In this document: piece after piece, positions 1 through 43,595 of the stretch | Layout of the letters: each line of letters starts with the position of its first letter | Numbering within the stretch: the first letter of the stretch is position 1 | Assembly: GCF_963921235.1 (NCBI RefSeq) | Contig: NC_086107.1 | Location: forward strand, 94,984,001 to 95,048,000 | Source: Mobula hypostoma | Taxonomy: Eukaryota | DNA length: 64,000 nucleotides | Direction: 5' to 3' | Notes under the pieces: generated by a model | What the model saw: only the letters and a program-made list of their open reading frames with translations | What the model was told of the DNA's origin: nothing | Databases searched by the model: none | Position numbers and translations under genes: made by a program

Positions 1-3000
1 CATCTGAAGATATGGTCTGTTCTCCTGTGGATTTTCCACCTGAAGATATGGTCTGTTCACCTATAGGTTCTTCACCTAAAGATATGATCTGTTCAACTGT
101 TGATCCTTCAGCTGAAGATATGGTCTGTTCATGTTTGCTAGTAGATTCGTCACCTGAAGATCCATCATGTTCATCTGTGTATTCTTCACCTAAAGATATG
201 GCCTGTTCACCTGTAGGTTCTTCACCTGAAGATACGGTCTTTTCAACTGTAGTTTCTTCACTTGAAGATACAGTCTGTTCGCCAGGAGACTTCTTGCCCC
301 TTGCCATTGCCTGCTTGGCTGCAGATTCTTGGCCCAAAAATAGGGGCTGTTGGGTTGAAGATACCTTCTCTGTAGCTAGGATCAATGATCCTATAGACTC
401 ATTACCTGTAGTCATGGTCTGCTCTGTCAATTCCTCACCTGGTGTCAGTGCCTGTTTGCCACTAGATTCTTTGCCTGAAGACACAACCTGTTCACCCAAA
501 GGTTCTTCATCTGCAGTCAGGAAATGGTCAAACGGAAAGATAAGAGCTGTAGTGAAAGGGTGGTCAAGTGGATACTTCATGCCTATAGCCAGTGATGGTT
601 CTGAAGGAAATACTTTGCCTGTAGTCACAGCCTGTTCAAGAGACAGCTGACCTGTAGTTAGAGGCTGTTCAAGAGATTCCTCACCTGTACTCAAAGCATC
701 TACTTTGGGAATCTTTTTGCCTGTACTCAGGCCCTGTTCTGAGAGAGATTTCTCACCTGCAATCAGGAAGTGGCCCACTGTGATGCCCTTGTCTGTACCT
801 TGGGACTGTGTGGGCTGTGATTCTGCACCTGTAGGTGATACCTGTGGCTCAGTTGTGACTGAGATAACTTCGCAGAGAGCGTCCTCCACTGTGGTCACTG
901 ACCCAGGTGCAGACACACCACTGAAAATCAGGGATGGTGGCAAAGGACTTTGTTTGCCTGTAGTTACATTGTGTTCAAATACAGGTTCCACATCCATTGG
1001 TAATAAAGATACATCACCTGTAGCCAGTGCCTGTTCAAGAGATTCCTCACCTGTAGTCAGAGTTTGTTCATTTGATTCCTCACCTGAATCCAGGAAATGG
1101 CCAAGTGGGAAATTAAGGACTGTAGTGGGAGGGCGGTTGGGTGGATACTCCTTGCTTGTAGCCTGTGACTGTTCCAAAGGAGATATTTTGCCTGTAGTCG
1201 GCACCTGTTCAAGAGATTTATGGCTTGTAGTTAGGAAATGGTTAGATGGGAAGTCAACAGCTGCAGGGCGGTCCAAAGGATACTGTATGCCTGTAGCCAG
1301 TGATGATTCCAATGGAGATTCTTTACCTGTCGTCAGAGCCTGAGCAAGAGATTCCTCATCTGTAGTCAGTGCCTGTTCAATTAATTCCCCAACTGTAGCC
1401 TGAGCAAGAGACTCCTCGTCTGTAGTCAGTGCCTGTTCAATTGATTCCCCAACCATAGCCTGTGCAAGAGATTCTTCGTCTGTAGTCAGTGGCTGTTCAA
1501 TTGATTCCCCAGCTGTAGCCTGTGCAAGAGATTCCTCGTCTGTAGTCAGCGCCTGTTCAATTGATTCCCTAGCTGTAGCCTGTGCAAGAGATTCTTCGTC
1601 TGTAGTCAGCGCCTGTTCAATTGATTCCTCACCTGTCGTTATCACCTGTTCAAGAGGTTCCCTGCCTGAATCCAGGAAATGATCAAATGGGAAGTCAGAT
1701 GCTGTACTGGGAGGGCGATCAAGTGGATATTTCACTCCTGTAGCTAACGACTGTTCTAAAGGAGATTCTTTGTCTGTAGCCAGCAATTGTTCAAGAGGTT
1801 TCTCACCTGTAGCTAGCACCTGTTGAAGAGATTCTTCACCCGTAGTCAGCACCTGTTCAAGTGTCTCCTCACCCGTACTCAGGCCCTGTTCTGTGAGAGA
1901 TTCCTTGCCTGCAATTGGGATGTGGCCCACTGCCATTTCTTTGCCTGTATTTTGGAGTTTTGTGGGGTGAGAGTGTGTACCTGCAGGTGAGACCTGTGGT
2001 TTGGTTGTGACTGAGATAACTTCACAAGGAGCATCCTCGACTGTGGTCACAGATTCAGGTGCAGAAACACCACCCACAATCAGATATGGCAGAGAAGGAG
2101 TTTGCACCCCTGTAGACTCATTTTGTTTGACTGTAAGTTCTAAGCCCGTTGGTAGCATTTGTTGCAATCGAAATTTTCCACCTGTAGGAAGTGCCTCTTC
2201 CAAAGATTTCTCACCTTTAGCAAGTGTCTGCTCAAAAAATTCCTCACCTGTAATCAGCGCTTGTTCAATGGATTCCTCGCCTGTAGACCAAATGTAGTCA
2301 AATGGGAAGTCAAATGCTGTAATGAGAGGGCGGTCGAGTGGATAGTGCATGCCTGTAGCCGGTGACGGTTCCAAAAGTGATTCTTTGCCTGTAGTTAAGG
2401 CCTGTTGAAGAGATTCCTCGCCTGTAGTCAGCACCTGTTCAAGAGATTCCCCAGTTGTAGTCAACACCTGTTCAAAAGTTTCGTTCCCTGAGGGCAGTGT
2501 CTGTTCAGTTGATTCCTCACCTGTCATTAGCACCTGTTCAAGAGATTGCTCGCCTGTAGGTAGGGTCTGTCCAATTGATTCCTCACCTGTAGTCAGCACC
2601 TGTTCAATTGATTCCTCACCTGTCATTATCACCTGTTCAAGGCGTTTCTCACCTGAATCCAGGAAATGGTCAAATGGGAAGTCAAGTGCTGCAGTGAGAG
2701 GGCGATCGAGTGGATATTCCACACCTGTAGCCAACGACTGTTCCAAAGGAGATTCTTCACTTGTAATCAGTGCCTGTTCATGAGATTCATTGCCCGTAGG
2801 GGACACCACTTCAAGAGCTTCCTCGCCTGTACTCAACGCTTGCTGCTGTGGAAATTTTTCATTTACAACTAGGCCCTTCTCAAGTGGGAGCTCCCTGCTT
2901 GTCGTCAAGAAGTGATCAAATTGGAAGCCAGAGACTGCAGGTTGTTGCTTTCTGCCTGTAGGGCCCTGCACACCATCTGAAGGGGTCTGTTGTTTGACTG

Positions 3001-4315
3001 CAGGACTCTGAACACCTGTAGGGCCCTGAAGTTGTCTGACTGCAGAATCCTGAACTCCACGTGTAGGTGGCTGTTGCCTGCCTACAGGACCACCATCTCC
3101 ATCTGCAGATGTCTCCTGGGGCCCAGCAAGAGGCTGTGAGTGGGAGCCCACCTCAGAGGTGAGGGAGGTCCGGGACCGGGACCCCCACCCCTCACCCAGC
3201 CCCTCTGAGCCATCTGTCCTCAGGCTGTGGCCCTCCTCGCTGTCCAGGTGGGAGTTGTCCAGGCTGGAGAAAGATGAGACCCTCCGCAGGGCACGGCCCT
3301 CCCAGGCGTCAGCCCCTGATTCCACCCTGCCCTGACTCCCGCTGGGGTCTTCAATTGCCCCCTCTGCCCCCCACAACCCCTTTTCCTCCCACCACCGCCG
3401 CCCTCTCTCCGTCTCCTGGCCTGGCGTTTCGATGGATGGAGTGTCAGGGGCCCCGAGCGACAGGGAGCCCCAGCGCGGTCCAAACAGGAGTCGGACTTCC
3501 CAGCCCTCTGCTTCCTCCTCCTCCCCCCTCAACACCCCAGAGTCCAGCAAGGGGGCAGGGACCGTTTCCCTGGAGATGGGGCTTAGGGTGGAGGCTTCGG
3601 CGGATCCAGGCCCTGTCTCCCGCTCCTTATGGCCCAGGAGGTTGTCCTGTAGGCCTCTGTCCTGTCCAGGGCCAGGCGGTGGGGTGACAATGATTTCCCC
3701 AGCAACAGGGTTTAGAGCAGAGGTTTCAGCAGAACCCGGCCCCTTTAGGCCCCCATCCTGTAGGCCTATGACCAGTTCTGGGCCCTGTGAGGGGGCAGGT
3801 CCTGATTCCACAGGTACAGAGGCTTTAGGAGATCCAGGCTCCTTCTCCATCACCTTGGGCCCTGAGAGGCCAGTCCTTAGACCTCTGTCCTCTCCTGGGC
3901 CTGGAAAGGAGACAGTCTCTGTTCCCACAGCAACGAGTCCTCTGGATCCCCCAGCATGGGGGACAGGCCTTGGGATGGGAAGGGGCCTGGCGAGTGGTGG
4001 CGAGGGGCGGTGGGGGCCAGGGGAGGTCCGGGGGTCCCAGGGTGGGGAGGGGAGGTGGGGTGGAAGGACTGCAGGGGCATGAGGAGGGGTGGCCTCCAGG
4101 CGGGGGCTGGCCGAGGGAGGGTGCTGAAACACCCAGGATTCTGAACTGTCCATCTCCTCCCTGCCCTGCGTCCCCCCTCCCGCTCTCTCCCCCTCCTTGT
4201 CCCGCATCCTGGCCCGGATGTGGTAGTAGCTGTCCGACAGCCAGTCGTTCTGAGGGAGCGTGGGGGCGAGATGCCCCTTCTTCGCCTCGGCCCGCTGAGT
4301 CCGGTGGTCCGAGCT
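1..4315 (-). CDS. Giant coding exon (>1430 codons, continues beyond window start) of an unidentified gene. Pro/Gly/Ser-rich region followed by acidic 11-13 aa tandem repeats
   Basis: Polypyrimidine tract plus acceptor (catcttctctttctcattccttccccacctacccacccacAG|agctcg) at 4316. Manual translation gives SSDHRTQRAEAKKGHLAPTLPQNDWLSDSYYHIRARMRDKEG...RRVSSFSSLDNSHLDSEEG...TGEESIEQVLT repeats...SSGGKSTGEQTISSD. The frame is the same at both ends. I translated 4315 to ~2480 and the last ~90 bp without meeting a stop. Between them, openness is inferred from the plus-strand shadow ORFs (12, 705, 2001, 3432), which share one register. Confidence 0.85.
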
Positions 4316-4599
4316 CTGTGGGTGGGTAGGTGGGGAAGGAATGAGAAAGAGAAGATGTGGTGAGAAGACGACCACTGTCATGTCCTATCACCTCCCCTCA
4401 ACTTTGCGATAGGACATTCCTCTGTCATTTCCGAGAAAGAGGCAACAAAGCCTCCCCAGTTGCTCCAGTGTCGTTCAAGGCCTCATTCCTGTTGCCTTCT
4501 TGTCTGTCCCTCACCTGTATACTATCCCAATCCCGACCCGAAAAGCCTTGATCCCAAACCTAGATGAGTCCCCATTGGGATGGAAGTGCAGAGGAAGGG

Positions 4600-6680
4600 A
4601 GTGAGTCTAAAGGTGTTGTAGAGGTCAATGTCGCAGGAACGGGGAAGAAAAATAGGTGGAGGGGTAGGTAGTGTTGAGGAAGCAGGAAGCCTGGACCAGG
4701 AAACTGGGCAAAGATGTGACAGATGAATTACAGTGTACGGTCATGCACGCCCTTAGGTAGAAGGAATAAAAACATAGACTATTTCCAAAATGGAGGTGCA
4801 AAGGGACTTGGGAGCCCTAAAAATTCTTGCAGATTGAGTAGGTAGTAAGGAAGACAAACACAATGTTAGCATTCATTTGAAGAGGACTGGAACATAAAAG
4901 CAAGGATGTAATACTGAGACTTCGTAAGATATTGGTCAGGCCACATTTGGAGCATTGTGAGCAGTTTTGGGCAAGAAAGGATGTGCTGGCATTGGAGAGG
5001 GTCCAGAGGAGGTTCACAAGAATGATCCCGGGAATGAAAGAGTTAACGTACGAAGGACGTTTGATGGCTTTGGGCCTGTACTCGTTGGTGTACAGAAGAA
5101 TGGGGGGGGCGCAGTGCAGATCTAATTGATACCTATTAACCATTGAAAGGCCAGGATATAGTGGACATCGGGAGGGTGTTTCCATTTGCAGATGACACCA
5201 AGGTTGGGGGCCACAGTGAACGGTGAGGAAGGCTATCAACGTTTGCAGCGGAATCTGGCCCCGCTGGAAAAATGGCAGATGGAATTTAATGCAGGCAAGT
5301 GTGAGGTGTTGTACTTTGAGAGGGCAATCTGGAGTAGGACCTACACAGTAAATGACAGGGCAATGAGGTGTTCGATAGAATACAGATCCGTAATTCCTTG
5401 AAAGTGGCATACCAGGTAGATAGGAATATAAAGAGAAGTCCCAGTACCTCAGCCTTCATTTTTTAAAAAAAGTATTGATTACAGGAGATGGGATGTTACG
5501 TTGAAGTTGCATAAGATGTTGGTGAGGACTAATTTGGAGTATCCTGTGCAGATCTGGCCAATTACCTACAGGAAAAGCATCAATAAGATTGAAAGAGTGC
5601 AGAGAAAATTTACAAGGATGTTGCCTGGATCTGCATTACAGAGAAATGCTGGATGGGTTATTCCCTGGAGCATAGGAGAATGAGGGAGATTTGCTGCAGG
5701 CATACAACATTATGAGGGGTATAGATAGAGGAAACACAAGCAGGCTTTTTCCACTGAGGTTGGGTGAAACCAGAACTAGAGGTCATAGGTTAAAGGTGAA
5801 AGGTGAAACATATGAGGGGGACCTTTTTCATTCGGAGGTTGGTGAGAGAATGGAATGAACTGCAAGTGGAAGTGCTGGATATGGGTTCGGTTTCAGCACC
5901 GAAGAGAAATGGATGGGAGAGGTATGGAGGACAGTGGTTCAGCTGCAGGTCAATGGGACTATGCAGAATAATAGTTTAGCGCAGACTAGATGGGCCTGTT
6001 TCTGTGCTGTAGTGCTCTAAGAATCTATTACAACTGGAGAAACAAGGACCAGAGTTCAGAGGAATGAGGGGGACTTTAATTGAAACTTACTGAATATTGA
6101 AAGGCCTAGAATCAATTTGGAGAGGACGCTTCCAAGGGTGAGATAGTCTAGGACCAGAGGGAACAGCCTCAGATAGAAGGACATTCATTTAGAACAGAGA
6201 TGAGGAGAAATTTCTTTGGGAGGGGGCGGTGAATCTGTGGAATTCATTGCCACAGACGACAGTGGAGGCCAAGTCATTGGGTATATTTAAAGTGAAGGTT
6301 GATAGGCTCTTGGTTAATAAGGGTGTCAAAGGATATGGGGAGAAGGCAGGAGAATGGGGTCGAGAGGGGTAATAAATCAGCCATGATGGAATGGCAGAGC
6401 GGACTTGATGGGTTCAATGGCCCTAATTCAGCTCCTGTGTCTTATGGTCTTGTGGAATGTAGAACATCAGAAGTCCATAGCTTTGGGTGAGGTGCCAGAA
6501 CACTGGAGGGGAGCAAGAGCTGTGTCTTTATTCAAGAAGGGAGGGCAGAGGAAACTCAGGGAACCTCTGACCAGTGAGTTTAACATCTGCCCTGAGGAAG
6601 TTATTGGGGTGGTTCTGAGGGATAAGGTTTCTGAGCATCTGCAAAGATGGGAGTTGATTAAGGGGAGTTAGCATGGGCTT
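4600..6680 (+). mobile_element. Cluster of degenerate CR1-clade LINE fragments
   Basis: ORF2 C-terminal motifs LVRPHLEHCEQFW, LERVQRRFTRMIPG, WQMEFNAGKCEV, and typical 3'UTR ends (gggcctgtttctgtgctgt). Confidence 0.85.
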
Positions 6681-7139: not shown

Positions 7140-8290
7140 TCCCAGGTTTTTCTAAGAATTGAGCCAGAAGGCCAACAGGGGGAGGGTAGTAGATGAGACC
7201 TACGTAGATTTCAGTAAGGTCTGCGATAAAGTTCCACGTGGCAGGTTGCAAGGTTAGATCTCATGGGATCCAGGAAGAATTCACGAACTGGACACACGGT
7301 TGGATGGCAGGAAGTGAAGGTGAGGGTGGACTGTTGTTTGTCAGACTGGAGACCTGAGACCAATGGTCCCCCCCCCCCCACCACAGTGTTGGGACGTTTG
7401 CTGTTTGTCACCTGTCTCGATGATTTGCGTGAGAATGTACAAAGCATAGTTCGTAAATTTGCAGAAGACATTAAAATCAGTGTTGTGAACAGTGAAGATG
7501 GTTATCGGGAATTACAGGGGGTTTTTGATCAGCAGAGTGAGTGGGCCGAGGAATGGCAAATGAAGTTTAGTTCGGATAAACGTGAGGTGTTGCACTTTGG
7601 GAGAGTTGGGTAGCGAGGTTGCAGGTGACTACAGCGTGAGGAAGTGTGAGAATGATGTACTTTGGAATGAAGGATAGAGGTGTAGGGAGGGAATTCAGGA
7701 ATCTCATTTCCAATAGGACACAAAACACTGCAGGAACTCAGCAGGCATAGAGGGACTAAACGGTTGACATATTGGGCCAATACCCTTCATCAGGACTGGA
7801 AAGGAAGAAATCCCAGTTTAGAATTCCCTCAAGGTTAACGTGCAGGTTGAGTCAGTAAAAATGAAGGGAAATGCAATGCAAGTTTTCATTTGAAGAGCAT
7901 ATAACAGCGAGAATGTAATGCTGAGGCTTTATAAGGCATAAGTCAGACCACATTTGTATAGAACCAAGAACAGTACAGCACAAGAAAAGGCCATTCGGCC
8001 CACAATGTTATGCTGAACTAATTAAACTAGTAATTAAATATCTAACTAAACTAATCCATTCTGCCTACACAATGTCCGCAGCCTACCATTCCTTTATTTA
8101 GAGGGAAATGCCTCTATTGTATTTTCCTCCAAAACCACCCCTGGCTGCACGTTCCAGGAATGCACCCCTCCTGTGTGAAATACGTCCTGCACCCCTCCTT
8201 TGAACTTTCTGCCTCTCACTTTAAACACACCTCCTCCAGTTTTTAATTTTACCTATAAGCCACATTTTCATCTGGGAATCCTTTATGCAC
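7140..8290. mobile_element. CR1 RT fragments on both strands, with a small Penelope terminal-repeat fragment at ~7715-7810 (minus)
   Basis: KFAEDIKI and WAEEWQMKFSSDK motifs. The minus strand reads ccagtcctgatgaagggtattggccc, matching the Penelope terminus at 31274. Confidence 0.7.
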
Positions 8291-8304
8291 CAAGAGGTCA
8301 CATT

Positions 8305-8523
8305 TTTTTTAAGCATGTCGTACCAGACATCACGTGATTAACCGGGTCACGTTATGAACGTTCCTGACTCGCCCCTTGTATTTTTTATGAGGCCGAGTGG
8401 CTAGCTCGACACTCAACCTGGCACGGATGGAAAGCGCGCTCGGGGGTGGCCCGACCTGGATTCGAACTCGGGAACCTTCGCTCCGGAGTCCGGCGCTGAT
8501 CTCACTGCGCCACCAGCCGGCCT
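8305..8523 (-). mobile_element. tRNA-derived SINE with 12-bp target-site duplication
   Basis: A box (TGGCGCAGTG), B box (GTTCGAATCC) and poly(A) tail. TSD agaggtcacatt at 8293-8304 and 8524-8535. Inserted in a CR1 fragment. Confidence 0.85.
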
Positions 8524-8535
8524 AGAGGTCACATT

Positions 8536-10780
8536 ATAGCTGCACAAGACGTCAGAGAGGCCACATTGGAGGGACTGTGTGCAGTTCTGGTCACCAAGCT
8601 ATAGAAAGTGTGGGATTCAGCTGGAGGAGGTACAGGAAAGATTCGTCAGGACGTTCCCGGGATCGGAGGGCTTGAATGATAAGGAGAGACTGATCAGGGC
8701 TGGAACTGGCTTCCCCGGAGCGAAGGAGACTGAGAGAGTGACCTGACATAGGTTTTTACAATCTCGGAAGCGGATGGTCACGGTTCCTCTCACCCGGGGA
8801 GGGGAGTCTAGACCCAGAGGGCACAGATTTAAGGTGAGAGGGGCGAGGTTTAAAGGGGCAGGCTTTCCCACGCAGAGGGTGGTGGGGATCTGGATTGAGC
8901 TGCCGGAGGAAGTGGGAGAGGTGGTTACAATGAAGACACTCGGACAGGTACATGGATAGGGAAGGTTCAGAGGGATACGGGCCTAACATGGAGAGATGGG
9001 ACCAATTCATGAAGAGATTTTGATACACTAATGAGTTGGGTGGCTCCTTAAGATTGACACAGCCAAGTGGGTGAGGGGGGCAGGAAGTGGGGATAAGTTC
9101 CCACTACCTATTAAATGCTCCCAATGGCGTGCATCTTAAATAGCCTCTGACAGTCAAGTCCAGCTCCCGGCCTTCACATGTGGCTTAGCTACTAAGCCCG
9201 GCGGAACCGTTTCTACTGGCAGGAGAGGGGGCAAAGGCGGGTTACTGGCACCTTAAAACCAGTCGCTTCGGGCAGATGGGGCTCGTCAGTAATGGTTGGC
9301 AGCTCATCTTGGAGAAGGAAAACTCTGATCTCAAGCCTTCAGTGCCTTGCGGCTACACCCACTCATGGGGAAGGCTTCGGGAGTAAACCCTGAGGGAAAA
9401 GACCGGAGCTGGAGGCTGGAGTCCCCAAGGCAGACCTACAGCGAGTTCACCGCTGACTGGCAACTCCTGCGACGCCGGTCTGTAGGGGTCTCAGCTGTTC
9501 CTTTGGATTCATCCGCTGCACGGGGGTGGGGGGGCAGGGGGGAGCCTGCCGCGTGGGCAACAACTTCCTCTCCAAACCGCGCTACCCTGACTTGTGTAGA
9601 CAGGCGGGATGCAACATCCATGATTGTCCCCGACCGAGAGGGCCTCAATGGGTCGGGTGAAAGGGCCCGTTTCTGTGCTGTCCGACGCCCTGTATCTGTG
9701 TAACGGAGGTGGTGGCGTGGCTGGGATGGGGGCAGTGGAGATTAAGCTGGACAGGGTGTGGGAAAGATTCACCCGGGTGCTCCCAGGACTGTTGGGCTTG
9801 AGCTATAAGGAAAGACTGGGCAGGCTGGGACTGTTTTCCCTGCAGAATCCCGAGTGGTGACCTGACAGTTTATAAAATCACCAGGGGTGTAGATAGGATG
9901 GATGGTCATGGTTTCTCCCCCCCGGGGAGGGGAGTCTAAACCCAGAGAGCACAGGTTTAAGGTGAGAGGGGAACGGTTTAAAAGGGCAGGTTATCCCACA
10001 CAGAGGGTGGTGGGGATCTGGATCGAGCTGCCGGAGGAAGTGGGAGAGGTGGCTACAATGAAGACACCCAGACAGGTACGTGGATAGGGAAGGATCAGAG
10101 GGATTCCAGCCCAACGCAGACCAGCTCACAAAGGGATTTTTATAATGAGCTGGGTGATTCCTGAAGATTTTTGCTGACAGGGAGGATGTGGGGATAATCT
10201 CCCAATACCTATTAAATGCTCCCAATGGTGTGTGTCCCAGATAGCCTCTGACCACCAAGTCCAGGCCCTGGCCTTCACGTGGGGCTTAGCTACGAAGCCT
10301 GGCGGAACCGTTTCCGCTGACGGGAAAAGGGGCAAAGGCGGGATACCAGTGTCTTAAAGCCAGCAGATTCAGGTAGATGGGGCTTGTCAGCTGTGATTAG
10401 CAACTCATGTTGGAGACGGAAAACTCTGATCTCAAACCTCCGCTGCCTTGTGGCTACACCCACTCACGGGGAAGGTTTCGGGAGAAAATCCCAAGAAAAT
10501 ATCTGGAGCTGGAGTCCCTAAGGCAGTCCTACTTTGAGTTCATCACTGACTGGCAACTTCTGCAATGCCCCTGGTGCCAAACTGTATGGGTCTCTGCTTT
10601 TCCTTTGGATTCATCAGCTGTGTGGAGAGGGGGAGCCTGTTGCATGGGCAACAGCTTGCTCACCATATCGTACTGCCCTGGCTTGTGTATCTTGTAGAAA
10701 GTTCATTCACAATATGCATGGTGGATCCTGACCAACAGAGGGCCTCAAAGAGTTGGGTGCCTGTTTTGTGTCTGTGTATG
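8536..10780 (+). repeat. Old tandem duplication (~1.15-kb unit x2) of a CR1 3' end carrying an RTE-like non-autonomous element (~9045-9648 and ~10160-10748)
   Basis: Both units share the CR1 segment (RGHRFKVRG...TQRVVGIWIELPEEVGEVVTMKT) and the same insert (ggaaaactctgatctcaa..gccttg.ggctacacccactca.ggggaagg.ttcgggag). The insert is flanked by gagttgggtg-like repeats at the same site in both. Confidence 0.75.
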
Positions 10781-14064: not shown

Positions 14065-17000
14065 GGGAGATGATGCAAAGGTCAGAGGTGGGACATTGGG
14101 CAGGGGGAGATGATGCAAAGGTCAATGATGGGACACTGGGCAGGGGGAGATGATACAAAGGTCAATGATGGGACTCTGGGCAGGGGGAGATGATGTGAAG
14201 GTCAGGGATGGGACTCTGGGCAGGGGGAGATGATGTGAAGGTCAGGGTTGGGACTCTGGGCAGGGGGAGATGATGCAAAGGTCAGAGGTGGAACACTGGG
14301 CAGGGGGAGATGATGTGAAGGTCAGGGATGGGACTCTGGGCAGGGGGAGATGATGTGAAGGTCAGGGATGGGACTCTGGGCAGGGGGAGATGATGTGAAG
14401 GTCAGGGATGGGATTCTGGGCAGGGGGAGATGATGTGAAGGTCAGGGATAGGACACTGGGCAGGGGGAGATGATGCAAAGGTCAATGATGGGATACTGGG
14501 TGGGGGAGATGATACAAACGTCAGCGATGGGACATTGGGCAGGGGGAGATGATGCAAAGGTCAGCGATGGGACACTGGGTGGGGGGAGATATACAAAGGT
14601 CAGGGGTGGGACACTGGGTGGGGGGAGATGATGTGAAGGTCAGGGATGGGACTCTGGGTGGGGGGAGATGATGTGAAGGTCAGGGATGGGACTCTGGGTC
14701 AGGGGAGATGATACAAAGGTCAGGGATGGGACTCTGGGCAGGGGGAGATGATACAAAGGTCAGGGATGGGACAGTGGGTGGGGGGAGATGATACAAAGGT
14801 CAGGGATGGGACACTGGGTGGGGGGAGATGATGTGAAGGTCAGGGATGTGACACTGGATGGGGAGAGATGATGTGAAGGTCAGGGATGGGACACTGGGTG
14901 GGGGGAGATGATGTGAAGGTCAGGGATGGGACACTGGGCAGGGGGAGATGATGTGAAGGTCAAGGATGGGTCACTGGGTGGGGGGGGTGATGATGTGAAG
15001 GTCAGGGATGGGACACTGGGCAGGGGGAGATGATGTGAAGGTCAGGGATGGGACATTGGGCAGGGGGAGATGATACAAAGGTCAGGGATGGGACTCTGGG
15101 TGGGGGGAGATGATGTGAAGGTCAGGGATAGGACACTGGGTGGGGGGAGATGATGTGAAGGTCAGGGATAGGACACTGGGTGGGGGGAGATGATGTGAAG
15201 GTCAGGGATGGGACACTGGGCAGAGGGAGATGATGTGAAGGTCAGGGATGGGACACTGGGCAGGGGGAGATGATGTGAAGGTCAGGGATGGGACACTGGG
15301 CAGGGGGAGATGATGTGAAGGTCAGGGATGGGACACTGGGCAGGGGGAAATGATGCGAAGGTCAGGGATGGGACACTGGGCAGGGGGAGACGATACAAAG
15401 GTCAGTGATGGGACTCTGGGTGGGGGAGATGATGTGAAGGTCAGCGATGGGACTCTGGGTGGGGAGAGATGATACAAAGGTCAGCGATGGGACACTGGGT
15501 GGGGGGAGATGATGTGAAGGTCAGCGATGGGACACTGGGTGGGGGGAGATGATGTGAAGGTCAGGGATGGGACACTGGGTTGGGGGAGATGATGCACTGG
15601 GCAGGGGGAGATGATGTGAAGGTCAGGGATGGGACACTGGGCAGGGGGAGATGATGTGAAGGTCAGCGGTGGGACACTGGGCAGGGGGAGATGATACAAA
15701 GGTCAGCGGTGGGACACTGGGCAGGGGGAGATGATGTGAAGGTCAGCGGTGGGACACTGGGTGGGGGGAGATGATACAAAGGTCAGAGGTGGGGCACTGG
15801 GCAGGGGGGGATGATGTGAAGGTCAGCGGTGAGACACTGGGTGGGGGGAGATGATACAAAGGTCAGAGGTGGGGCACTGGGTGGGGGGAAATGATGTGAA
15901 GGTCAGTGGTGGGACACTGGGTGGGGGGAGATGATACAAAGGTCAGAGGTGGGGCACTGGGCAGGGGGAGATGATGTGAAGGTCAGTGGTGGGAGATGAT
16001 ACAATGGTCAGAGGTGGGGCACTGGGTGGGGGGAGATGATACAAAGGTCAGAGGTGGGGCACTGGGCAGGGGGAGATGATGTGAAGGTCAGCGGTGGGAC
16101 ACTGGGTGGGGGGAGATGATACAAAGGTCAGAGGTGGGGCACTGGGCAGGGGGAGATGATGTGAAGGTCAGTGGTGGGAGATGATACAATGGTCAGAGGT
16201 GGGGCACTGGGTGGGGGGAGATGATACAAAGGTCAGAGGTGGGGCACTGGGCAGGGGGAGATGATGTGAAGGTCAGCGGTGGGACACTGGGTGGGGGGAG
16301 ATGATACAAAGGTCAGAGGTGGGGCACTGGGCAGGGGGAGATGATGTGAAGGTCAGTGGTGGGACACTGGGTGGGGGGAGATGATACAAAGGTCAGAGGT
16401 GGGGCACTGGGTGGGGGGAGATGATACAAAGGTCAGAGGTGGGGCACTGGGCAGGGGGAGATGATGTGAAGGTCAGCAGTGGGACACTGGGTGGGGGGAG
16501 ATGATACAAAGGTCAGAGGTGGGGCACTGGGCAGGGGGAGATGATACAAAGGTCAGAGGTGGGGCACTGGGTGGGGGGAGATGATACAAAGGTCAGAGGT
16601 GGGGCACTGGGCAGGGGGAGATGATGTGAAGGTCAGTGGTGGGACACTGGGTGGGGGGAGATGATACAAAGGTCAGAGGTGGGCCACTGGGTGGGGGGAG
16701 ATGATACAAAGGTCAGAGGTGGGGCACTGGGTGGGGGGAGATGATACAAAGGTCAGAGGTGGGGCAATGGGCAGGGGGAGATGATGTGAAGGTCAGCGGT
16801 GGGACACTGGGTGGGGGGAGATGATACAAAGGTCAGAGGTGGGGCACTGGGTGGGGGGAGGTGATACAAAGGTCAGAGGTGGGGCACTGGGCAGGGGGAG
16901 ATGATACAAAGGTCAGAGGTGGGGCACTGGGCAGGGGGAGATGATACAAAGGTCAGAGGTGGGGCACTGGGTGGGGGGAGATGATACAAAGGTCAGAGGT

Positions 17001-19232
17001 GGGACTCTGGGTGGGGGAGATGATACAAAGGTCAGAGGTGGGGCACTGGGTGGGGGGAGATGATACAAAGGTCAGAGGTGGGACTCTGGGTGGGGGAGAT
17101 GATACAAAGGTCAGTGGTGGGACACTGGGTGGGGGGAGATGATACAAAGGTCAGAGGTGGGGCACTGGGTTGGGGGAGATGATACAAAGGTCAGAGGTGG
17201 GGCACTGGGTGGGGGAGATGATACAAAGGTCAGAGGTGGGGCACTGGGCAGGGGGAGATGATGTGAAGGTCAGTGGTGGGACTCTGGGTGGGGGGAGATG
17301 ATACAAAGGTCAGAGGTGGGGCACTGGGTGGGGGGAGATGATACAAAGGTCAGAGGTGGGGCACTGGGCAGGGGGAGATGATGTGAAGGTCAGTGGTGGG
17401 ACACTGGGTGGGGGGAGATGATACAAAGGTCAGAGGTGGGGCACTGGGTGGGGGGAGATGATACAAAGGTCAGAGGTGGGGCACTGGGCAGGGGGAGATG
17501 ATGTGAAGGTCAGCAGTGGGACACTGGGTGGGGGGTGATGATACAAAGGTCAGAGGTGGGGCACTGGGCAGGGGGAGATGATACAAAGGTCAGAGGTGGG
17601 GCACTGGGTGGGGGGAGATGATACAAAGGTCAGAGGTGGGGCACTGGGCAGGGGGAGATGATGTGAAGGTCAGTGGTGGGACACTGGGTGGGGGGAGATG
17701 ATAGAAAGGTCAGAGGTGGGGCACTGGGTGGGGGGAGATGATACAAAGGTCAGAGGTGGGGCACTGGGCAGGGGGAGATGATGTGAAGGTCAGCGGTGGG
17801 ACTCTGGGTGGGGGGAGATGATACAAAGGTCAGAGGTGGGGCACTGGGTGGGGGAGATGATACAAAGGTCAGAGGTGGGGCACTGGGCAGGGGGAGATGA
17901 TACAAAGGTCAGAGGTGGGGCACTGGGCAGGGGGAGATGATACAAAGGTCAGAGGTGGGGCACTGGGTGGTGGGAGATGATACAAAGGTCAGAGTTGGGG
18001 CACTGGGCGGGGGGAGATGATACAAAGGTCAGAGGTGGGGCACTGGGCGGGGGGAGATGATACAAAGGTCAGAGGTGGGGCACTGGGTGGGGGGAGATGA
18101 TACAAAGGTCAGAGGTGGGACTCTGGGTGGGGGAGATGATACAAAGGTCAGAGGTGGGGCACTGGGTGGGGGGAGATGATACAAAGGTCAGAGGTGGGAC
18201 TCTGGGTGGGGGAGATGATACAAAGGTCAGAGGTGGGGCACTGGGTGGGGGGAGATGATACAAAGGTCAGAGGTGGGACTCTGGGTGCGGGAGATGATAC
18301 AAAGGTCAGTGGTGGGACACTGGGTGGGGGGAGATGATACAAAGGTCAGAGGTGGGGCACTGGGTGGGGGAGATGATACAAAGGTCAGAGGTTGGGCACT
18401 GGGTGGGGGAGATGATACAAAGGTCAGAGGTGGGGCACTGGGTGGGGGGAGATGATACAAAGGTCAGAGGTGGGACTCTGGGTGGGGGGAGATGATACAA
18501 AGGTCAGAGGTGGGGCATTGGGCGGGGGGAGATGATACAAAGGTCAGAGGTGGGGCACTGGGTGGGGGAGATGATACAAAGGTCAGAGGTGGGGCACTGG
18601 GTGGGGGAGATGATACAAAGGTCAGAGGTGGGGCACTGGGTGGGGGAGATGATACAAAGGTCAGAGGTGGGGCACTGGGTGGGGGGAGATGATACAAAGG
18701 TCAGAGCTGGGGCACTGGGTGGGGGAGATGATACAAAGGTCAGAGGTGGGGCACTGGGTGGGGGAGATGATACAAAGGTCAGAGGTGGGGCACTGGGTGG
18801 GGGAGATGATACAAAGGTCAGAGGTGGGGCACTGGGTGGGGGGAGATGATACAAAGGTCAGAGCTGGGGCACTGGGTGGGGGAGATGATACAAAGGTCAG
18901 AGGTGGGGCACTGGGTGGGGGAGATGATACAAAGGTCAGAGGTGGGGCACTGGGTGGGGGGAGATGATACAAAGGTCAGAGGTGGGGCACTGGGTGGGGG
19001 GAGATGATACAAAGGTCAGAGGTGGGGCACTGGGTGGGGGGAGATGATACAAAGGTCAGAGGTGGGGCACTGGGTGGGGGAGATGATACAAAGGTCAGAG
19101 GTGGGGCACTGGGTGGGGGAGATGATACAAAGGTCAGAGGTGGGGCACTGGGTGGGGGAGATGATACAAAGGTCAGAGGTGGGGCACTGGGTGGGGGAGA
19201 TGATACAAAGGTCAGAGGTGGGGCACTGGGTG
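14065..19232. repeat. G-rich minisatellite, 39-40-bp unit (gggggagatgatacaaaggtcagaggtggggcactgggtg), ~130 copies
   Basis: Directly visible periodicity. Variant units (gatgtgaaggtcagggatgggacactgggca) dominate the left part. Confidence 0.98.
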
Positions 19233-19352: not shown

Positions 19353-19517
19353 CTGAAGAAGAGGAAGAGAGCAGGTCAAGGTGGGAGTGTGATTGCTGGG
19401 CGAGATGGTCAGACAGGTTCAGTAGGATCGGGAGGGGCTGTCGTCGGTGACTTGGTCGTTTGTATTCATAATTAGCATGTCCAGGTAACAGGGTGGGATG
19501 GTGGAGGGGTGTGAACC

Positions 19518-21416
19518 CGGGGTCAGACACAGAGTGAAACTCCCTCTACACCGTCCCGTCACACACTCCCAGAGTCAGGCACAGAGTGAAACTCCCTCCA
19601 CACCGTCCCGTCACGCACTCCCAGGGTCAGACACAGAGTGAAGCTCCCTCCACACCGTCCCATCACACACTCCCAGAGTCAGTCACAGAGTGAAGCTCCC
19701 TCCACACCGTCCCGTCACACACTCCCAGGGTCAGTCACAGAGTGAAGCTCCCTCCACACCGTCCCGTCACACACTCCCAGGGTCAGGCACAGAGTGAAGC
19801 TCCCTCCGCACCGTCCCGTCACACACTCCCAGGGTCAGGCACAGAGTGAATCTCCCTCCGCACCGTCCCGTCACACACTCCCAGAGTCAGGCACAGAGTG
19901 AATCTCCCTCCGCACCGTCCCGTCACACACTCCCAGAGTCAGGCACAGAGTGAAGCTCCCTCCGCACCGTCCCGTCACACACTCCCAGAGTCAGGCACAG
20001 AGTGAAGCTCCCTCCACACCGTCCCGTCACACACTCCCAGGGTCAGGCACAGAGTGAATCTCCCTCCGCACCGTCCCGTCACACACTCCCAGAGTCAGGC
20101 ACAGAGTGAATCTCCCTCCGCACCGTCCCGTCACACACTCCCAGAGTCAGGCACAGAGTGAAGCTCCCTCCGCACCGTCCCGTCACACACTCCCAGAGTC
20201 AGGCACAGAGTGAAGCTCCCTCCGCACCGTCTCGTCACACACTCCCAGGGTCAGGCACAGAGTGAAGCTCCCTCCACACTGTCCTATCACACAACCCCAG
20301 GGTCAGACACAGAGTGAATCTCCCTCCACACCGTCCCATCACACACTCCCAGGGTCAGGCACAGAGTGAATCTCCCTCCACAGTATCCCAGCACACATTC
20401 CCAGGGTCAGACACAGAGTGCATCTCCCTCCACACCGTCCCATCACACACTCCCAGGATCAGACACAGAGTGAAGCTTCCTCCACAGTGTCCCATCACAC
20501 ACTCCCAGGGTCAGGCACAGAGTGAAGCTCCCTCCACACTGTCCCATCACACACTCCCCGGGTCAGGCACAGAGTGAAACTCCCTCCACACGGTCCCGTC
20601 ACACACCCCCGGGGTCAGACACAGAGTGAATCTCCCTCCACACCGTCCCATCACACACTCCCAGGGTCAGGCACAGAGTGAAGCTCCCTCCACACCGTCC
20701 CATCACACACTCCCGGAGTCAGGCACAGAGTGAAGCTCCCTCCACACCGTCCCATCACACACTCCCGGGGTCAGACACAGAGTGAAGCTCCCTCCACACG
20801 GTCCCGTCACACACCCCCGGGGTCAGGCACAGAGTGAAGCTCCCTCCACACCGTCCCATCACACACTCCCAGGGTCAGGCACAGAGTGAAGCTCCCTCCA
20901 CACGGTCCCGTCACACACCCCCGGGGTCAGACACAGAGTGAATCTCCCTCCACACCGTCCCATCACACACTCCCAGGGTCAGGCACAGAGTGAAGCTCCC
21001 TCCACACCGTCCCATCACACACTCCCGGAGTCAGGCACAGAGTGAAGCTCCCTCCACACCGTCCCATCACACACTCCCGGGGTCAGACACAGAGTGAAGC
21101 TCCCTCCACGCTGTCCTATCACACACCCCCGGGGTCAGGCACAGAGTGAATCTCCCTCCACACTGTCCCATCACACACTCCCAGGGTCAGACACAGAGTG
21201 AATCTCCCTCCACACTGTCCCATCACATACTCCCAGTGTCAGGCACAGAGTGAAGCTCCCTCCACAGTGTCCCATCACACACTCCCAGGGTCAGACACAG
21301 AGTGCATCTCCCTCCACAGTGTCCCATCACATACTCCCAGTGTCAGGCACAGAGTGAAGCTCCCTCCACAGTGTCCCATCACACACTCCCGGGGTCAGGC
21401 ACAGAGTGAAGCTCCA
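19518..21416. repeat. C-rich minisatellite, 52-bp unit (cacagagtgaagctccctccacaccgtcccatcacacactcccagggtcagg), ~36 copies
   Basis: Period 52 (agagtgaa at 19531, 19583, 19635...). Confidence 0.98.
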
Positions 21417-21779: not shown

Positions 21780-24090
21780 TAGCCCACATCCCTGCCCCAG
21801 GCCTCATGGAGGCAAAGGGTGAGGGAAGGAGCGGAGATTCACAGTTTGAACTGGTCACTATATACGGAGATTGTTGCCATTTTACCTGCCACGGGCAGTT
21901 CAGTGAACATTTTGGTAGCAGTGTACAATCTACCAAAGGCTAATGTCAAACTGGCTCGAGATGAACTGAGCGACAGGCATGAAACAGCACAGCCTGACAA
22001 TTCCACCATCATTTTTGGAGATTTTAACCAGCCAGCTTGAAAATGTCACTAAATAATTATCATCAACAAATCACTTGTGGCACCAGAGGAAACAACACAC
22101 TGGATCACTGTTCCACCACCATCAGGAATACCTACCGTGCTAGTCCACGCCCTCACTTCAGGCAATCTGATCACCTGGCTGTACTTCTACTCCCTGAGTA
22201 TAGGCAGAGACTGAAGAATGCAGCACCAGCAGCGAGGACCAAGAAGGTTTGGACAAGGGAAGCACAGGAGCTTTGAATCTGTGGACTGGACTGTATTCAT
22301 CTTCGAGTCTGGATGAGTATGCTACAGTTGTCACCAACTTCATTAAAACCTGTGTGGATGAGTGTGTGCCTATGAAAACTTGCTGTACATTCCCAGACCA
22401 AAAGCTGAGGTTTGTTACTCGATCTGTGGCACTTAAGGCTGGAGACCCAGGCCTGTACGAGGAAACCAGCGTGACTTGCGGAGGGCTATTTCAAGAGCAA
22501 AGAGCGAGGCTGGGGCGACATCGGATGCGCGGCAACCCACTTTGAAAGGGAGAATACAACTACAGCGGTGACCCTGTGATCTCTGTCTCGGAGGCTGACG
22601 TCAGGCTTTCCTTGACCCCAACGGAGTTCCTGGTGAGGCTCGGAAAACTTGTGCCAACCAGCTGATGGGGGTTATTCAAAGACAGTTTCAATCTCTCACT
22701 GCTACAGTCGGAGGTTCCCACCCAATTCAAAAGGGCAACAATTATACCAGTGCCCAAGAAGAGCAGAGTGAGCTGCCGCAGCGACTATTGTCCAGGAGCT
22801 CACCTCTACGGTGATGAAGCTGCTCACGGCCAGAGCAAGGACCTGGACCCACTGCTATTTGCCTATCGCCACAATAGGTGTACAGCAGACACGATCTCAA
22901 TGGCTCCCCTTGTGGCCTTGGATCACCTGGACAATGCAAATGCCTGTCAGGATGCTGTTTATTGACTACAGCTCAGCGTTCAACCCCATCATTCCCAGTG
23001 CCCTGATCAAAAAGCTACAGAACCTGGGCCTCCGTACCCCCCTCTGCAACTGGATCCTCAACTTCCTAACAAGAAGACCACAATCGGTGTGGATTGGCTC
23101 CTCACCTCCATCTCGCTGACGATCAACGCTGGTGCACCTCAAGGGTGTGTGCTACTCTCTGTATACCCTGGACTGTGCGGCTAGGCACAGCTCAAATACC
23201 ATCTATAAATTTGCTGATGATACAACCATTGTTGACAGAATCTCAGGTGGTGACGAGAGGGCATTCAGGAGCGAGATATGCCAACTAATGGAGTGGTGTC
23301 ACAGCAACAACCTGGCACTCAACGTCAGTAAGATGAAAGAGCTGATTGTGGACTTCAGGAAGGGTAAGACGAAGGAACACATACCAATCCTCATAGAGGG
23401 ATCAGAAGTGGAGAGAGTGAGCAGTTTCACGTTCCTGGGTGTCAAGATCTCTGAGGATCTAACCTGGGCCCAATATATCAATGCAGCTATAAAGAAGGCA
23501 AGACAGTGGCTATATTTCTTTAGGAGTTTCAGGAGATTTGGTTTGTCAACTAAAACACTCGAAAACTTTTACAGAGGTACTGTGGAGAGCATTCTGACTG
23601 GCTGCATCACCATCTGGTATGGGATGGGGGGGGGGGGCTACTGCACAGGATCAAGATAAACTGCAGAAACTTGTAAAATTAGTCAGCTCCATCATGAGTA
23701 CCAGCCTCTGTAGTATCAAGGAGCGGTGCCTCAGAAAAGGGGCGTCCATCATTAAGGACCACCACCACCCAGGGCAGGCCCTTTTCTCACTGTTACCATC
23801 AGGGAGGAGGTACAGGAGCCTGAAGACACACACTCAGCGATTCAGGAACAGCCTCTTCCCCTCTGCCATCCGATTCCTAAATGGACATTGAACCCGTGAA
23901 CAAAACCTCACTACTTTTTTTTTAAGTTTCTGTTTTTGCGTTGCTTATTTCAATTTAACTACTTAAAGTACGTATTTATGCACTTACTGCAATTGATTTT
24001 TTCCCTGTACTTATCAATGTACTGCTGCCACAAAGTTAACAAATTTCACGACACATGCCGGCGATTTTAAACCAGAGTTTGATTCTGCTG
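21780..24090 (+). mobile_element. Degenerate Rex1/Babar-type LINE (APE endonuclease + RT)
   Basis: [50 protein letters not shown] and LLPSGRRYRS motifs, with multiple frameshifts. Confidence 0.9.
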
Positions 24091-24634
24091 TTGCCACAGG
24101 TGCGATGAAAAACTTCCCCACAGCAACATCACAGGCACAGAGCGTCAGAGACACGGGGTTCACAACAGAAGCAGCAATGAATGTAAACTGAGGATCTTAT
24201 GTGTCTTGTTTTCAGTTTATAAATTTCAAACTCTGGTCAGACCGCATCTGGATTACTGTATTCGGTCCTGGTCGCCCTGTTGCAGGAAGGGTGTGGGGGC
24301 TTTGGAGAGGGTGCAGAAGGAATTCACCCGGATTAGAGGACATGAGGCTGTAAGGAGAGGTTTTATCTGGAGCAGCGGAGGTTGAGGGGAGACCTCATGG
24401 AGGTCTAAAAGATTATGCGAGGCATGATAGAGTAGAGAGCCAGTATCTTTTTTTTCCCTCTCGGGGCATGTACTTACAGTGAAAGGGGGTAAATTTAAGG
24501 AGCTCTGCGGGTCAAGTGTGTTTTTCACATAGAGAGTGATGGATGCCTGCAACGCGGCACCAGGGGTGGTGGTGGAGGCAAGTACATCAGGTAGGGGCAT
24601 GGTTGTAGAGGGAATGGAGGGTAATGGACATTGT

Positions 24635-25633
24635 GGTTGCAACACTGTGTGTCCGACAGAGTGATCAGCAGCACTGGGGCTCCACAGGGGACTGTCTTGT
24701 CTCCCTTTCTCTTCACCATTTACACCTCGGACTTCAACTACTGCACAGAGTCTTGTCATCTTCAGAAGTTTTCGGATGACTCTGCCATAGTTGGATGCAT
24801 CAGCAAGGGAGATGAGGCTGAGTACAGGGCTACGGCAGGAAACTTTGTCACATGGTGTGAGCAGAATTATCTGCAGCTTAATGTGAAAAAGACTAAGGAG
24901 CTGGTGGTAGACCTGAGGAGAGCTAAGGTACCCGTGACCCCTGTTTCCATCCAGGGGGTCAGTGTGGACATGGTGGAGGATTACAAATACCTGGGGATAC
25001 AAATTGACAATAAACTGGACTGGTCAATGAACACTGAGGCTGTCTACAAGAAGGGTCAGAGCCGTCTCTATTTCCTGAGGAGACTGATGTCCTTTAACAT
25101 CTGTCGGACGATGCTGAGGATGTTCTACGAGTCTGTGGTGGCCAGTGTGATCATGTTTGCTGTTGTGTGCTGGGGCAGCAGGCTGAGGGTAGCAGACACC
25201 AACAGAATCAACAAACTCATTCGTAAGGCCAGTGATGTTGTGGGGATGGAACTGGACTCTCTGACGGTGGTGTCTGAAAAGAGGATGCTGTCCAAGTTGC
25301 ATGCCATCTTGGACAATGTCTCCCATCCACTACATAATGTACTGGTTGGGCACAGGAGTACATTCAGCCAGAGACTCATTCCACCGAGATGCAACACTGA
25401 GCATCATAGGAAGTCATTCCTGCCTGTGGCCATCAAACTTTACAACTCCTCCCTTGGAGGGTCAGACACCCTGAGCCAATAGGCTGGTCCTGAACTTATT
25501 TCCTGGCATAATTTACATATATTATTTAATAATTTATGGTTTTATATTGCTATATTTATACTATGTTGTTGGTTGGTGCAACTGTAATGAAACCAAATTT
25601 CTCTCGGGATCAATAAAGTATGACTATGACTAT
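24635..25633 (+). mobile_element. Young 5'-truncated Rex1/Babar-type LINE inserted in a CR1 3' fragment (24220-25735)
   Basis: Uninterrupted ~280-aa RT C-terminal ORF (GAPQGTVLSPFLF, QKFSDDSAIVG, YKYLG), then AATAAA and an (ATGACT)n tail. The CR1 sequence resumes after it. Confidence 0.92.
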
Positions 25634-27485: not shown

Positions 27486-27641
27486 ATCATCACACACTCC
27501 CAGGGTCAGATACGGGTGGAGTTACCTCTACACCATCCCATCACACACTCCCAGGGTCAGATCTGGGGCAGAGCTCTCTCTGTACCATCCTGTCACACAT
27601 TCCCAGGTTCAGATACAAGATGGAACTCAGTTCAGCTACAA

Positions 27642-28860: not shown

Positions 28861-29230
28861 AGCTTACAAGGTGGAGCTCCCTCCACACCATTGTATCATA
28901 CACTCCCAGATTCAGCCACAAGGTGGAGCTCCCTCCACACCATTGTATCATACACTCCCAGATTCAGCCACAAGGTGGAGCTCCCTCCACACCATTGTAT
29001 CATACACTCCCAGATTCAGCCACAAGGTGGAGCTCCCTCCACACCATTGTACCATACACTCCCAGATTCAGCCACAAGGTGGAGCTCCCTCCACACCATT
29101 GTATCATACACTCCCAGGTTCAGCCACAAGGTGGAGCTCCCTCCACACCATTGTATCATACACTCCAGGTTCAGCCACAAGATGGAGCTCCCTCCACACC
29201 ATTGTATCATACATTCCCAGGTTCAGCCCC
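28861..29230. repeat. Variant 52-bp minisatellite array (aggtggagctccctccacaccattgtatcatacactcccagattcagccaca), continuing the units at 27488-27640
   Basis: About 7 tandem copies homologous to the 19.5-21.4 kb unit. Confidence 0.9.
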
Positions 29231-42070: not shown

Positions 42071-43595
42071 TTTTAAATTGCTTCCTTGTCATGTGCTCCG
42101 CGTGGACCAGCTGCGCCCGTTCCACTATCACTGCGTGTTCCAATGCCGGCTCTGCCTCCGGCGAGACCCCACGACCACGGGACGGACACGGCCAGATGCT
42201 CCCGTTTGCTCCGATGACGACCTTTTCCGATCGCTGTCATTCACCGCGGCCTGAAATGCTACCTGCAGCCCCGCACGCCACGCTCGAGGGTTGCGCAGAG
42301 GCCATCGGCCATCGGCCGACGAGGTGGCCGGGAAGGCGGCGTTCTCCCCGAGTACCTCGGGCTGGTGGAATGAGCGCTGAGGACGGGGATCACGATGCGC
42401 GGGACTTTTCTACTGGCGCTACTGCTGAACGAGGGTTGAAATAAATTTGTTTCTCAAGACCATCCCATCACAGTCTCCTGAGGTCAGACGCTGAGGGAAA
42501 TTCCCTCCGCACCGTTCCGTCGCTTTCTCTCGGTCACTCCTCTTCCTCAAGTAAGTAAGCGTCTCTCTCCCATCCCATCGGGCGGAAGATAGAAACGCCT
42601 GAAAACACACCCCATCCCGCTGTCAACAGACCTCGGTCTCACATTCCATCTCGTTGTGTTCTGGTTACCCTGCTGGGGCAACTACCGTTCCTACGGGTAG
42701 CCCCTTCCACTCTTACACCACCCTGAGTCAAGTCCTATCTCCTCAAATTCCCCTTCAATATATCACCTTTCCCCTCGCCCTTCCTCCCAACCCCCCATAA
42801 ATTCTCTCTCTCTCCCCCTCCCTTTCTACTTTTCTCTCCCCTCTCCTGCACCTCAGGGTCCCAGCAGGATTTTCACCCCCAACTCCATAGGAGAAGCCGT
42901 GCAGCCAGTTTCAACCCCGAATGCCCTGATACACCTCGCCGCTTCTCCTCCTTCACTCCCCTCCCCTCTATCTCTCCCTCCCCCTTATCCCGCAACCTCC
43001 ATGCCTCCCTCCCACTTCACTCCCCGTGACCAAAGGGCGAGGCATTTCCCCGAGACGCATTCTGCCGCTCCTGGAGTCTGAGCGAAAATCCAGTCTCCAC
43101 GCACAGCGTAAGTAAAGAGACCAGTGAGTCCACGGCCGGGGAACAGGCCTTCCGGCCCATCGTGTCTATGATGGTGTCTACGTTGCATTGTTTCTGTGTC
43201 TGTCCTGGGCTGCCAGCTCCCATCCCTACTCTCCCAGCCGAGAATCACCCACAAAGCTAGATCGGCCACAGTTCGCCCGTTGTTTGAAGTGAGCATGGAC
43301 CGTGGGAGGGTGAGGAGCGAGGCTGGGATTGGACCCGATTTCCCAGGGTGGATCGCTTCCCCTTGGGAGGGAGCATCCCCATTTCAAGACTGGGATGTTC
43401 CAGCCTAACAACCTGTTCCGTCCATTTGATCTCCTCTCCAACCCCTCTCTCCTCCCCCACACCGCCTCTTCCCGTTCCCCCTCCACTCTCTCTTCCACTA
43501 CACACTCCCCTTCCCTCCTCCACCTCCCCTACACCCTCCCTTTCCCTCCTCCCCTCCACTACACACTCCCCTTCCCTACAACCACTCCCCTACAC

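Follow-up and report, generated by a model that had tools for sequence, protein, structure and literature searches.

Analysis of a 64,000-nucleotide stretch of the Mobula hypostoma genome (NCBI RefSeq assembly GCF_963921235.1, contig NC_086107.1, positions 94,984,001 to 95,048,000 of the forward strand; hereafter the window, numbered from its first base) uncovered a giant, partial coding exon on the minus strand (1..4315) in a region that also holds genes for claudin i and PELO, two satellite arrays, and retrotransposon remnants. The exon is genuine, expressed, and spliced, and on balance it probably belongs to an orphan gene for an acidic, disordered repeat protein, proposed to be a cytoplasmic scaffold or spacer that is either restricted to rays or too fast-evolving to be recognized elsewhere.

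The exon comprises 1438 codons, starts in phase 0, contains no in-frame stop, and is still open at base 1. When the minus strand is translated from 4330 to 1, 1443 codons are read with zero stops; across the exon itself (4315 to 1), the other two minus-strand frames contain 65 and 93 stops and the plus-strand frames 77, 69, and 21. An earlier reading made from the letters of this DNA (the sequence-only reading) had proposed an open frame of about 1438 codons from 4315 to base 1 and its absence from the track of open reading frames (ORFs), and both points hold: the ORF listing omits frames that run off the window. The plus-strand ORFs that were then taken for antisense shadows (12-650, 705-1343, 3274-3687, 3432-4082, and 3970-4329) match no Pfam family, consistent with that view. 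Two thirds of the exon consists of repeats with periods that are multiples of three, and in-frame amplification of such stop-free units, rather than selection, could hold a frame open for a time; the exon would then be a spliced non-coding or decaying transcript. We regard this explanation as very improbable. The non-repetitive head of the exon (1.4 kb, the first 462 codons) has 0 stops in the main frame vs. 8-15 in each of the other five frames, and none of 2000 dinucleotide-preserving shuffles of the head remained open; they carried 9.8 stops on average and never fewer than 3, and shuffling the whole exon gave a mean of 54. The open frame is therefore not merely a by-product of the repeats.

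The exon is bounded on its 5′ side by a 3′ splice site (4316..4345, minus strand), in which a polypyrimidine tract of approximately 28 nucleotides (nt) leads to CAG with the AG at 4317-4316; the minus strand reads ...ctttctcattccttccccacctacccacccacAG up to the junction and AGCTCGG after it, and the exon runs in phase 0 from 4315. The clean acceptor predicted at 4316 was confirmed by both this sequence and a spliced contig whose match stops there. Within the exon, the first in-frame ATG is codon 37 (4205..4207, context gccaggATGc) and the second is codon 55 (4151..4153, context gaggagATGg). Both contexts are acceptable, and translation could begin at either codon if the upstream exon is untranslated.

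Evidence of transcription came from four runs representing four samples of the same organism (X1-X4; 86-241 million letters of contigs each). Using the exon alone as query, 0.97, 0.58, 0.41, and 0.30 of its sampled 31-nt words (31-mers) were found in X1, X2, X3, and X4, respectively. Collections of 86-241 Mb are far too small for chance coverage of a multi-gigabase genome, and the runs are read as RNA from their exon-limited coverage. When X1 contigs were aligned to positions 1-6000, the exon was covered nearly end to end at a depth of 11-15. Coverage halved in the bin 4201-4400, and none of the four runs had any at 4401-4600. The RNA contigs are shallow across runs (depth 2-15), which is a point in favor of a non-coding or decaying transcript. 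One X1 contig of 2843 nt (contig 7) matches 1599-4317, and its first 124 nt occur nowhere within 1-6000. As these unmatched nucleotides precede the acceptor on the minus strand, the transcript is spliced there, and the two additional matching bases at the junction imply that the upstream exon ends in AG. The plus strand reads CT, not GT, at 4316-4317, so that the junction is compatible only with a minus-strand transcript. The coverage and junction check proposed in the sequence-only reading thus came out in its favor, with contigs of all four RNA-like runs on the exon. No joint was listed inside 1-4315, indicating that the exon is continuous in RNA. The sole RNA variant is A>G at 140 (X2 and X3), at the third position of a Thr codon and synonymous by our count.

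At position 1275, one X1 contig matches to within the fourth copy of a repeated motif described below and then continues into 176 GC-rich nt that have no counterpart in the window (0 matches at up to 3 mismatches). This break is not a splice because no AG precedes it on the minus strand; the contig may be chimeric, or it may come from a paralogue or from another repeat copy outside the window.

The predicted product of at least 1438 residues has an isoelectric point (pI) of 4.4 and a net charge of −135, with 173 Glu and only 2 Cys. Its unique head (2930..4315; amino acids (aa) 1-462) is rich in Pro, Gly, Ser, and Trp, has a pI of 5.4, is predicted to be disordered, and contains an internal duplication of approximately 40 aa (aa 138-175 vs. 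214-255). Three features of the head named earlier were all recovered, namely the sequence QNDWLSDSYYHIRARMRD (aa 22-39), a Pro-rich tract (aa ~65-120), and RRVSSFSS (3263..3286; aa 344-351), whose match to a basophilic-kinase-type (RRxS) consensus is a sequence pattern only. Third-codon-position GC shifts sharply within the exon, from 0.64 in the head (2930-4315) to 0.35 in the repeat domain (1-2929).

The acidic repeat domain (1..2929; aa 463-1438; pI 4.2, net charge −120) is built from several kinds of unit, all encoded on the minus strand. The TGEESLEQ-type repeats of 11 aa described in the sequence-only reading are present as 33-nt arrays detected by TRF, the longest of which (TGEESLEQxLT) spans 2401..2655, with further arrays at 618-697, 1007-1093, 1774-1891, and 2171-2252. 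These arrays are interrupted by six copies of an anchor motif of approximately 19 residues with the consensus YPLDRP-x5-DFPFDHFL: copy 1, YPLDRPLTAALDFPFDHFL, at 2660..2716 (aa 534-552), copy 2 at 2288..2344 (aa 658-676), copy 3 at 1673..1729 (aa 863-881), copy 4 at 1232..1282 (aa 1012-1028, two residues shorter), copy 5, the degenerate YPPNRPPTTVLNFPLGHFL, at 1091..1147 (aa 1057-1075), and copy 6 at 518..574 (aa 1248-1266). Half of the motif, FQFDHFL, is also found at 2906-2926 (aa 464). A module of approximately 85 aa (..VSAPESVTTVEDAPCEVISVTT..) occurs twice, at 1850..2104 (aa 738-822), where it holds one of the two Cys, and at 698..952 (aa 1122-1206). Five young 60-nt repeats (20 aa, xxxESIEQALTTDEESLAQA) lie at 1337..1636 (aa 894-993) with 91% matches and no indels. 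The 3′-most units, which were previously read as 13-aa repeats near the window edge, in fact have a period of 36 nt, or 12 aa (SSGEEPxGEQTI; 4..295, TRF period 36, 7.9 copies), and run off the window; the 16 Ser-Gly dipeptides of the product are concentrated in these acidic 12-mers.

In order to gauge the constraint on the repeats, internal copies were compared with each other. Nine comparisons gave synonymous divergences (dS) of 0.32-0.97 and ratios of non-synonymous to synonymous divergence (dN/dS) of 0.32-0.69, values that derive from protein-guided local alignments of paralogous repeats, which biases the ratio downward, and that gene conversion could distort. The two ~85-aa modules, whose spacing of 384 residues defines a super-repeat of approximately 384 aa, share 61% amino acid identity with a dN/dS of 0.42 over 167 codons. 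The repeat copies are old and have diverged under amino acid constraint, and the domain has grown by in-frame duplication, both tandem (33-, 36-, and 60-nt units) and of higher order (about 1150 nt). Whether indels between copies are multiples of three was examined by DNA-level alignment, which introduced artefactual compensating gaps of 1-2 nt; just the net length differences (6, 15, 6, and 0 nt) are such multiples, and the result is not counted as evidence. Against a non-coding transcript stand both the old copies that are still in frame (dS 0.3-1.0, dN/dS 0.3-0.7) and the retention of the anchor motif in six diverged copies. Together, a frame open beyond chance, a splice site, transcription, and fewer non-synonymous than synonymous changes characterize 1-4315 as a protein-coding exon.

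The sequence is also present in related species. DNA runs of six other organisms contain 0.08-0.42 of the exon's 31-mers, which corresponds to approximately 3-8% nucleotide divergence by our own conversion (share raised to the power 1/31). One small RNA-like run from another organism contains 0.06 of them.

Structure predictions are in line with a disordered product that has helical tracts, although both AlphaFold2 models are of low confidence overall (pLDDT 44-45), below the level that would justify fold searches. The single-sequence model of the head is disordered (mean pLDDT 45) with one short helix at 303-311, whereas the model of the repeat region places long helices exactly over the 11-mer arrays (pLDDT 55-70), with no order in the anchors or the 85-aa module. 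Hydrophobicity in the 11-mer arrays has its strongest power, 159, at 98 degrees (shuffles 8.6 ± 8.6), which is the 11/3 period of amphipathic alpha-helices. In their 11-residue period, their hydrophobic residues at i, i+3, and i+4, their 98-degree moment, and their predicted helices, these arrays resemble apolipoproteins A/E, perilipins, alpha-synuclein, and group 3 LEA proteins. Unlike in those proteins, the polar face is almost purely acidic, there is no Lys belt, and each unit carries a Thr-Gly helix breaker. No Pfam match was found at E ≤ 1, Lys is scarce, the basic-acidic pattern of a class A amphipathic helix is lacking, and the net charge is −120, so that the repeats were not assigned to the exchangeable apolipoproteins, perilipins, or synucleins, which they resemble in design only; given the acidic face, the missing Lys belt, and the lack of a Pfam match, classical lipid binding is unlikely. 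Among short linear motifs, FFAT, LIR, clathrin-box, FxDxF/DPF, EVH1, and KEAP1 ETGE were compared by eye with the anchor motif at the level of consensus sequences, and none fits.

The sequence-only reading could not assign the product to a family, and neither could our searches, which included the head search that it had called for. Pfam returned only sub-threshold noise for the whole exon (Tape_meas_lam_C, DM9, and ssDNA_TraI_N), the PDB sequence search gave no match at E ≤ 0.1, and ESM Atlas feature searches did not rise above noise (scores of 0.80 or below). Among candidates of 791-2516 aa, word-index protein searches matched neither the head (aa 1-520) nor the tail (aa 1190-1438). An exhaustive HMMER search of aa 1-1200 against 1.84 billion representative proteins yielded 17 weak matches with E-values no better than 3.5e-10, none of which extends outside the repeats. 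The four inspected matches (P0001, P0005, P0007, and P0011) align to aa ~495-712 at E 3.5e-10 to 2.8e-5 through short arrays of 10-11-mers (PTGEKPIPVTI, TGDETNQQSAT, QAGEQSIENKT). Only the repeats match (21-45% identity) and the host proteins are entirely different, one being NLR-like; these TGE-type repeat proteins were therefore rejected as homologues and are attributed to compositional convergence. A literature search for the motifs retrieved nothing relevant, only papers on pfdhfr. The lack of any protein model or homologue in the collection is also what would be expected of a non-coding transcript.

The same searches bear on whether 1-4315 could belong to an otherwise known gene as its poorly conserved projection or spacer exon, with the recognizable domains encoded beyond base 1 or far upstream, as in CMYA5/myospryn exon 2, MAP2/MAP4/tau, the giant ankyrin-B/G exons, and AKAP12. 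A short 5′ exon followed by a multi-kb exon for an acidic, disordered, fast-evolving repeat spacer is the layout of such genes, giant spacer exons diverge fast and often escape sequence searches, and more protein must follow in the ray, where the frame is open at base 1. Those proteins are defined by a C-terminal B-box-coiled-coil, two FN3 domains, and a SPRY domain following the giant exon (CMYA5/TRIM76), C-terminal tubulin-binding repeats PF00418 (MAP2/MAP4/tau) and projection domain PF08377 (MAP2), ZU5/death domains (ankyrins), and RII-binding helices (AKAP12). No sequence similarity to any of them was detected, and the ray exon has no MAP2_projctn match. The protein collection includes the RefSeq claudin i of both the Mobula hypostoma genome and Mobula birostris; a RefSeq model using the exon in either species would score far better than 1e-30, and hence no such protein model is present, nor does any protein there contain any part of aa 1-1200. 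The 791-2516-aa candidates that lacked a match to the head or to aa 1190-1438 also argue against a known gene, as do the minus-strand ORFs at 4.4-45 kb that reach 40 aa or more (70 + 95 + 93, 258 in all), which encode no host Pfam domain, and the human neighbors of these genes, which to our knowledge are neither PELO nor a claudin. On this evidence we consider a known gene unlikely.

Nestin (and transitin/tanabin) was also compared. The nestin tail, with its acidic repeats of 11 residues, comes from a giant last exon, and the ray product shares with it the giant exon, the strongly acidic disordered composition, and tandem 11-residue units with S-L-E..Q..L. It differs in that the 258 upstream ORFs contain no Filament (PF00038) rod, that no nestin-like match occurs among the 1.84 billion representatives, and that what precedes the repeats is a unique head of 462 aa, not a rod; the neighbors at the human nestin locus also differ from those of the ray exon. 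With no rod upstream and no tail similarity, membership of the nestin-type intermediate filaments was rejected.

The net charge of −135, the near absence of Cys (2 residues), and the 16 Ser-Gly dipeptides clustered in the tail 12-mers could instead suggest a secreted acidic matrix, mineral-binding, or proteoglycan-type protein, with its signal peptide in the upstream exon and the SSGEE tail providing glycosaminoglycan or Ca2+-binding sites; the phase-0 intron is likewise that of SCPP/SPARC-like matrix genes. Nothing resembling a signal peptide emerged when AG|GT donors with an in-phase ATG were sought, no link, EGF, or lectin domains are encoded in the upstream ORFs, the head is rich in Trp and Arg and carries the RRxS kinase-type site, and contigs are present in all four samples, not in one specialized tissue. 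No signal peptide or membrane segment was seen in the available part of the product. A secreted protein is thus improbable, if less so than a non-coding transcript. The glycosaminoglycan exons of the lecticans (versican/aggrecan, in a family that also includes neurocan and brevican) are comparable in being giant exons for an acidic, Ser/Thr/Glu-rich, weakly conserved product with some acidic Ser-Gly sites, but there the intron phase is 1 vs. phase 0 in the ray. The ray neighbors are claudin i and PELO, with no HAPLN-lectican synteny, and no signal peptide was found. Since the open frame requires a phase-0 start at 4315 and the upstream ORFs (4.4-45 kb) contain no Xlink or Ig match, the exon was not assigned to the lecticans.

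The remainder of the window was surveyed for the missing upstream exon and for neighboring genes. The 258 upstream ORFs contain only transposon domains by Pfam (RVT_1, rve, RT_RNaseH, and Integrase_H2C2), and the donor-site scan (AG|GT with an in-phase open frame) revealed no convincing first exon upstream. A CpG-rich patch at 8200-8800 was rejected as a promoter, being accounted for by a tRNA-derived short interspersed nuclear element (SINE; ggccggctggtggcgcagtgag...ggttcccgagttcgaatcc, 8380-8540, minus strand). The window's strongest CpG island (42000-42800), whose observed/expected ratio reaches 1.23, is situated between the giant exon and claudin i where no gene is annotated. It may be the promoter of the giant-exon gene or may belong to the neighboring retroelement.

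Claudin i, a classical claudin, is encoded at 45052-45714 on the minus strand (Pfam PMP22_Claudin; matches to claudin-4/9/3 structures at 5e-27 to 1e-23). Its ORF shares 97% identity with the Mobula birostris claudin i and 84% with the Hemitrygon akajei protein, and the exact sequence is found in the NCBI part of the protein collection. PELO is encoded on the plus strand at 53447-55622, with the eRF1_1 domain at 55167-55622. The two genes are arranged head-to-head about 8-9.5 kb apart, an arrangement shared by three ray assemblies, those of Mobula birostris and Hemitrygon akajei among them. In all three annotations, the 10 kb downstream of claudin i are free of called protein genes. The annotated PELO 5′ end lies at a CpG-rich patch (53201-53800). 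The PELO product is 488 aa in Mobula birostris vs. 385 aa in Mobula hypostoma and Hemitrygon akajei, and the longer version may be an extended or mis-joined gene model.

Repetitive DNA of several kinds separates the giant exon from claudin i. Directly upstream of the acceptor, 4600-6000 is a high-copy transcribed repeat with a contig depth in the thousands in all four RNA-like runs and many variant joints; this marks it as a high-copy transposon, with the depth and variant joints expected of a young family. Two satellites lie back to back, one at 14065-19230 (a G-rich 40-bp unit, 129 copies, GC skew about +0.64) and the other at 19516-21415 (a 52-bp unit, 36.5 copies, 92% identity), and smaller copies of the 52-bp family are found at 27488-27616 and 28866-29233. 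Reverse-transcriptase and integrase remnants are scattered between the exon and claudin i. In the window as a whole, retrotransposon reverse-transcriptase ORFs and a Tc3-type transposase helix-turn-helix fragment occur at 39845-41086 (+), 24631-25482 (+), 23132-23659 (+), and 58511-58957 (−), with one ORF intact over 413 aa.

Several points weigh against an expressed orphan scaffold gene. The four runs are labeled only “RNA?”, with their RNA status taken from exon-limited coverage, and their contigs carry neither strand nor abundance information. Absence from protein databases is compatible with a RefSeq non-coding or pseudogene model at the locus, and the part of the gene beyond base 1 lies outside the window and could encode a known domain. 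The functional reading (scaffold, partner-binding motif, and cytoplasmic location) is based on composition and pattern only.

We nevertheless favor an orphan coding gene, in which splicing at the acceptor (4317-4316) connects the exon with 124 nt or more of unplaced upstream exon. The product of 1438 or more residues consists of a head predicted to be disordered followed by acidic 11-mer arrays punctuated by the anchor motif and the ~85-aa module. Such a protein might act as a long, polyanionic, flexible scaffold or spacer, probably intracellular (cytoplasmic), in which the helix-prone acidic 11-mers separate copies of an aromatic- and proline-containing short linear motif presented to a partner. 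The gene would either be restricted to rays or evolve too fast for recognition outside them. The sequence-only reading had likewise proposed that the exon encodes a large, disordered spacer and that its protein is lineage-specific or evolves rapidly; disorder models, the lack of relatives, and the spliced transcript support it, while “spacer” itself is a functional guess. More tentatively, and with somewhat less than even confidence, we suggest that the gene is a ray-restricted, possibly mobulid- or myliobatiform-restricted, orphan that encodes more than 1400 residues in a single giant exon and founds a new family of multivalent disordered scaffolds, built on a short linear motif not described before, YPLDRP-x5-DFPFDHFL, repeated between acidic amphipathic 11-mer helices and without relatives in other vertebrates.

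The exon looks like a genuine gap in the gene map, a transcribed and spliced ORF of more than 4.3 kb without a matching protein model in the databases searched, in a cartilaginous-fish genome that is of reference quality. Homology-guided annotation pipelines tend to miss precisely such giant exons, rich in repeats and disordered. The protein itself is of a familiar kind, a lineage-restricted disordered repeat protein from a giant exon, and represents no new category of biology. Its conserved anchor motif could be used as bait for a binding partner, and if the gene is truly restricted to rays, it would provide a large and tractable case of the growth of a long disordered protein through nested in-frame duplication.

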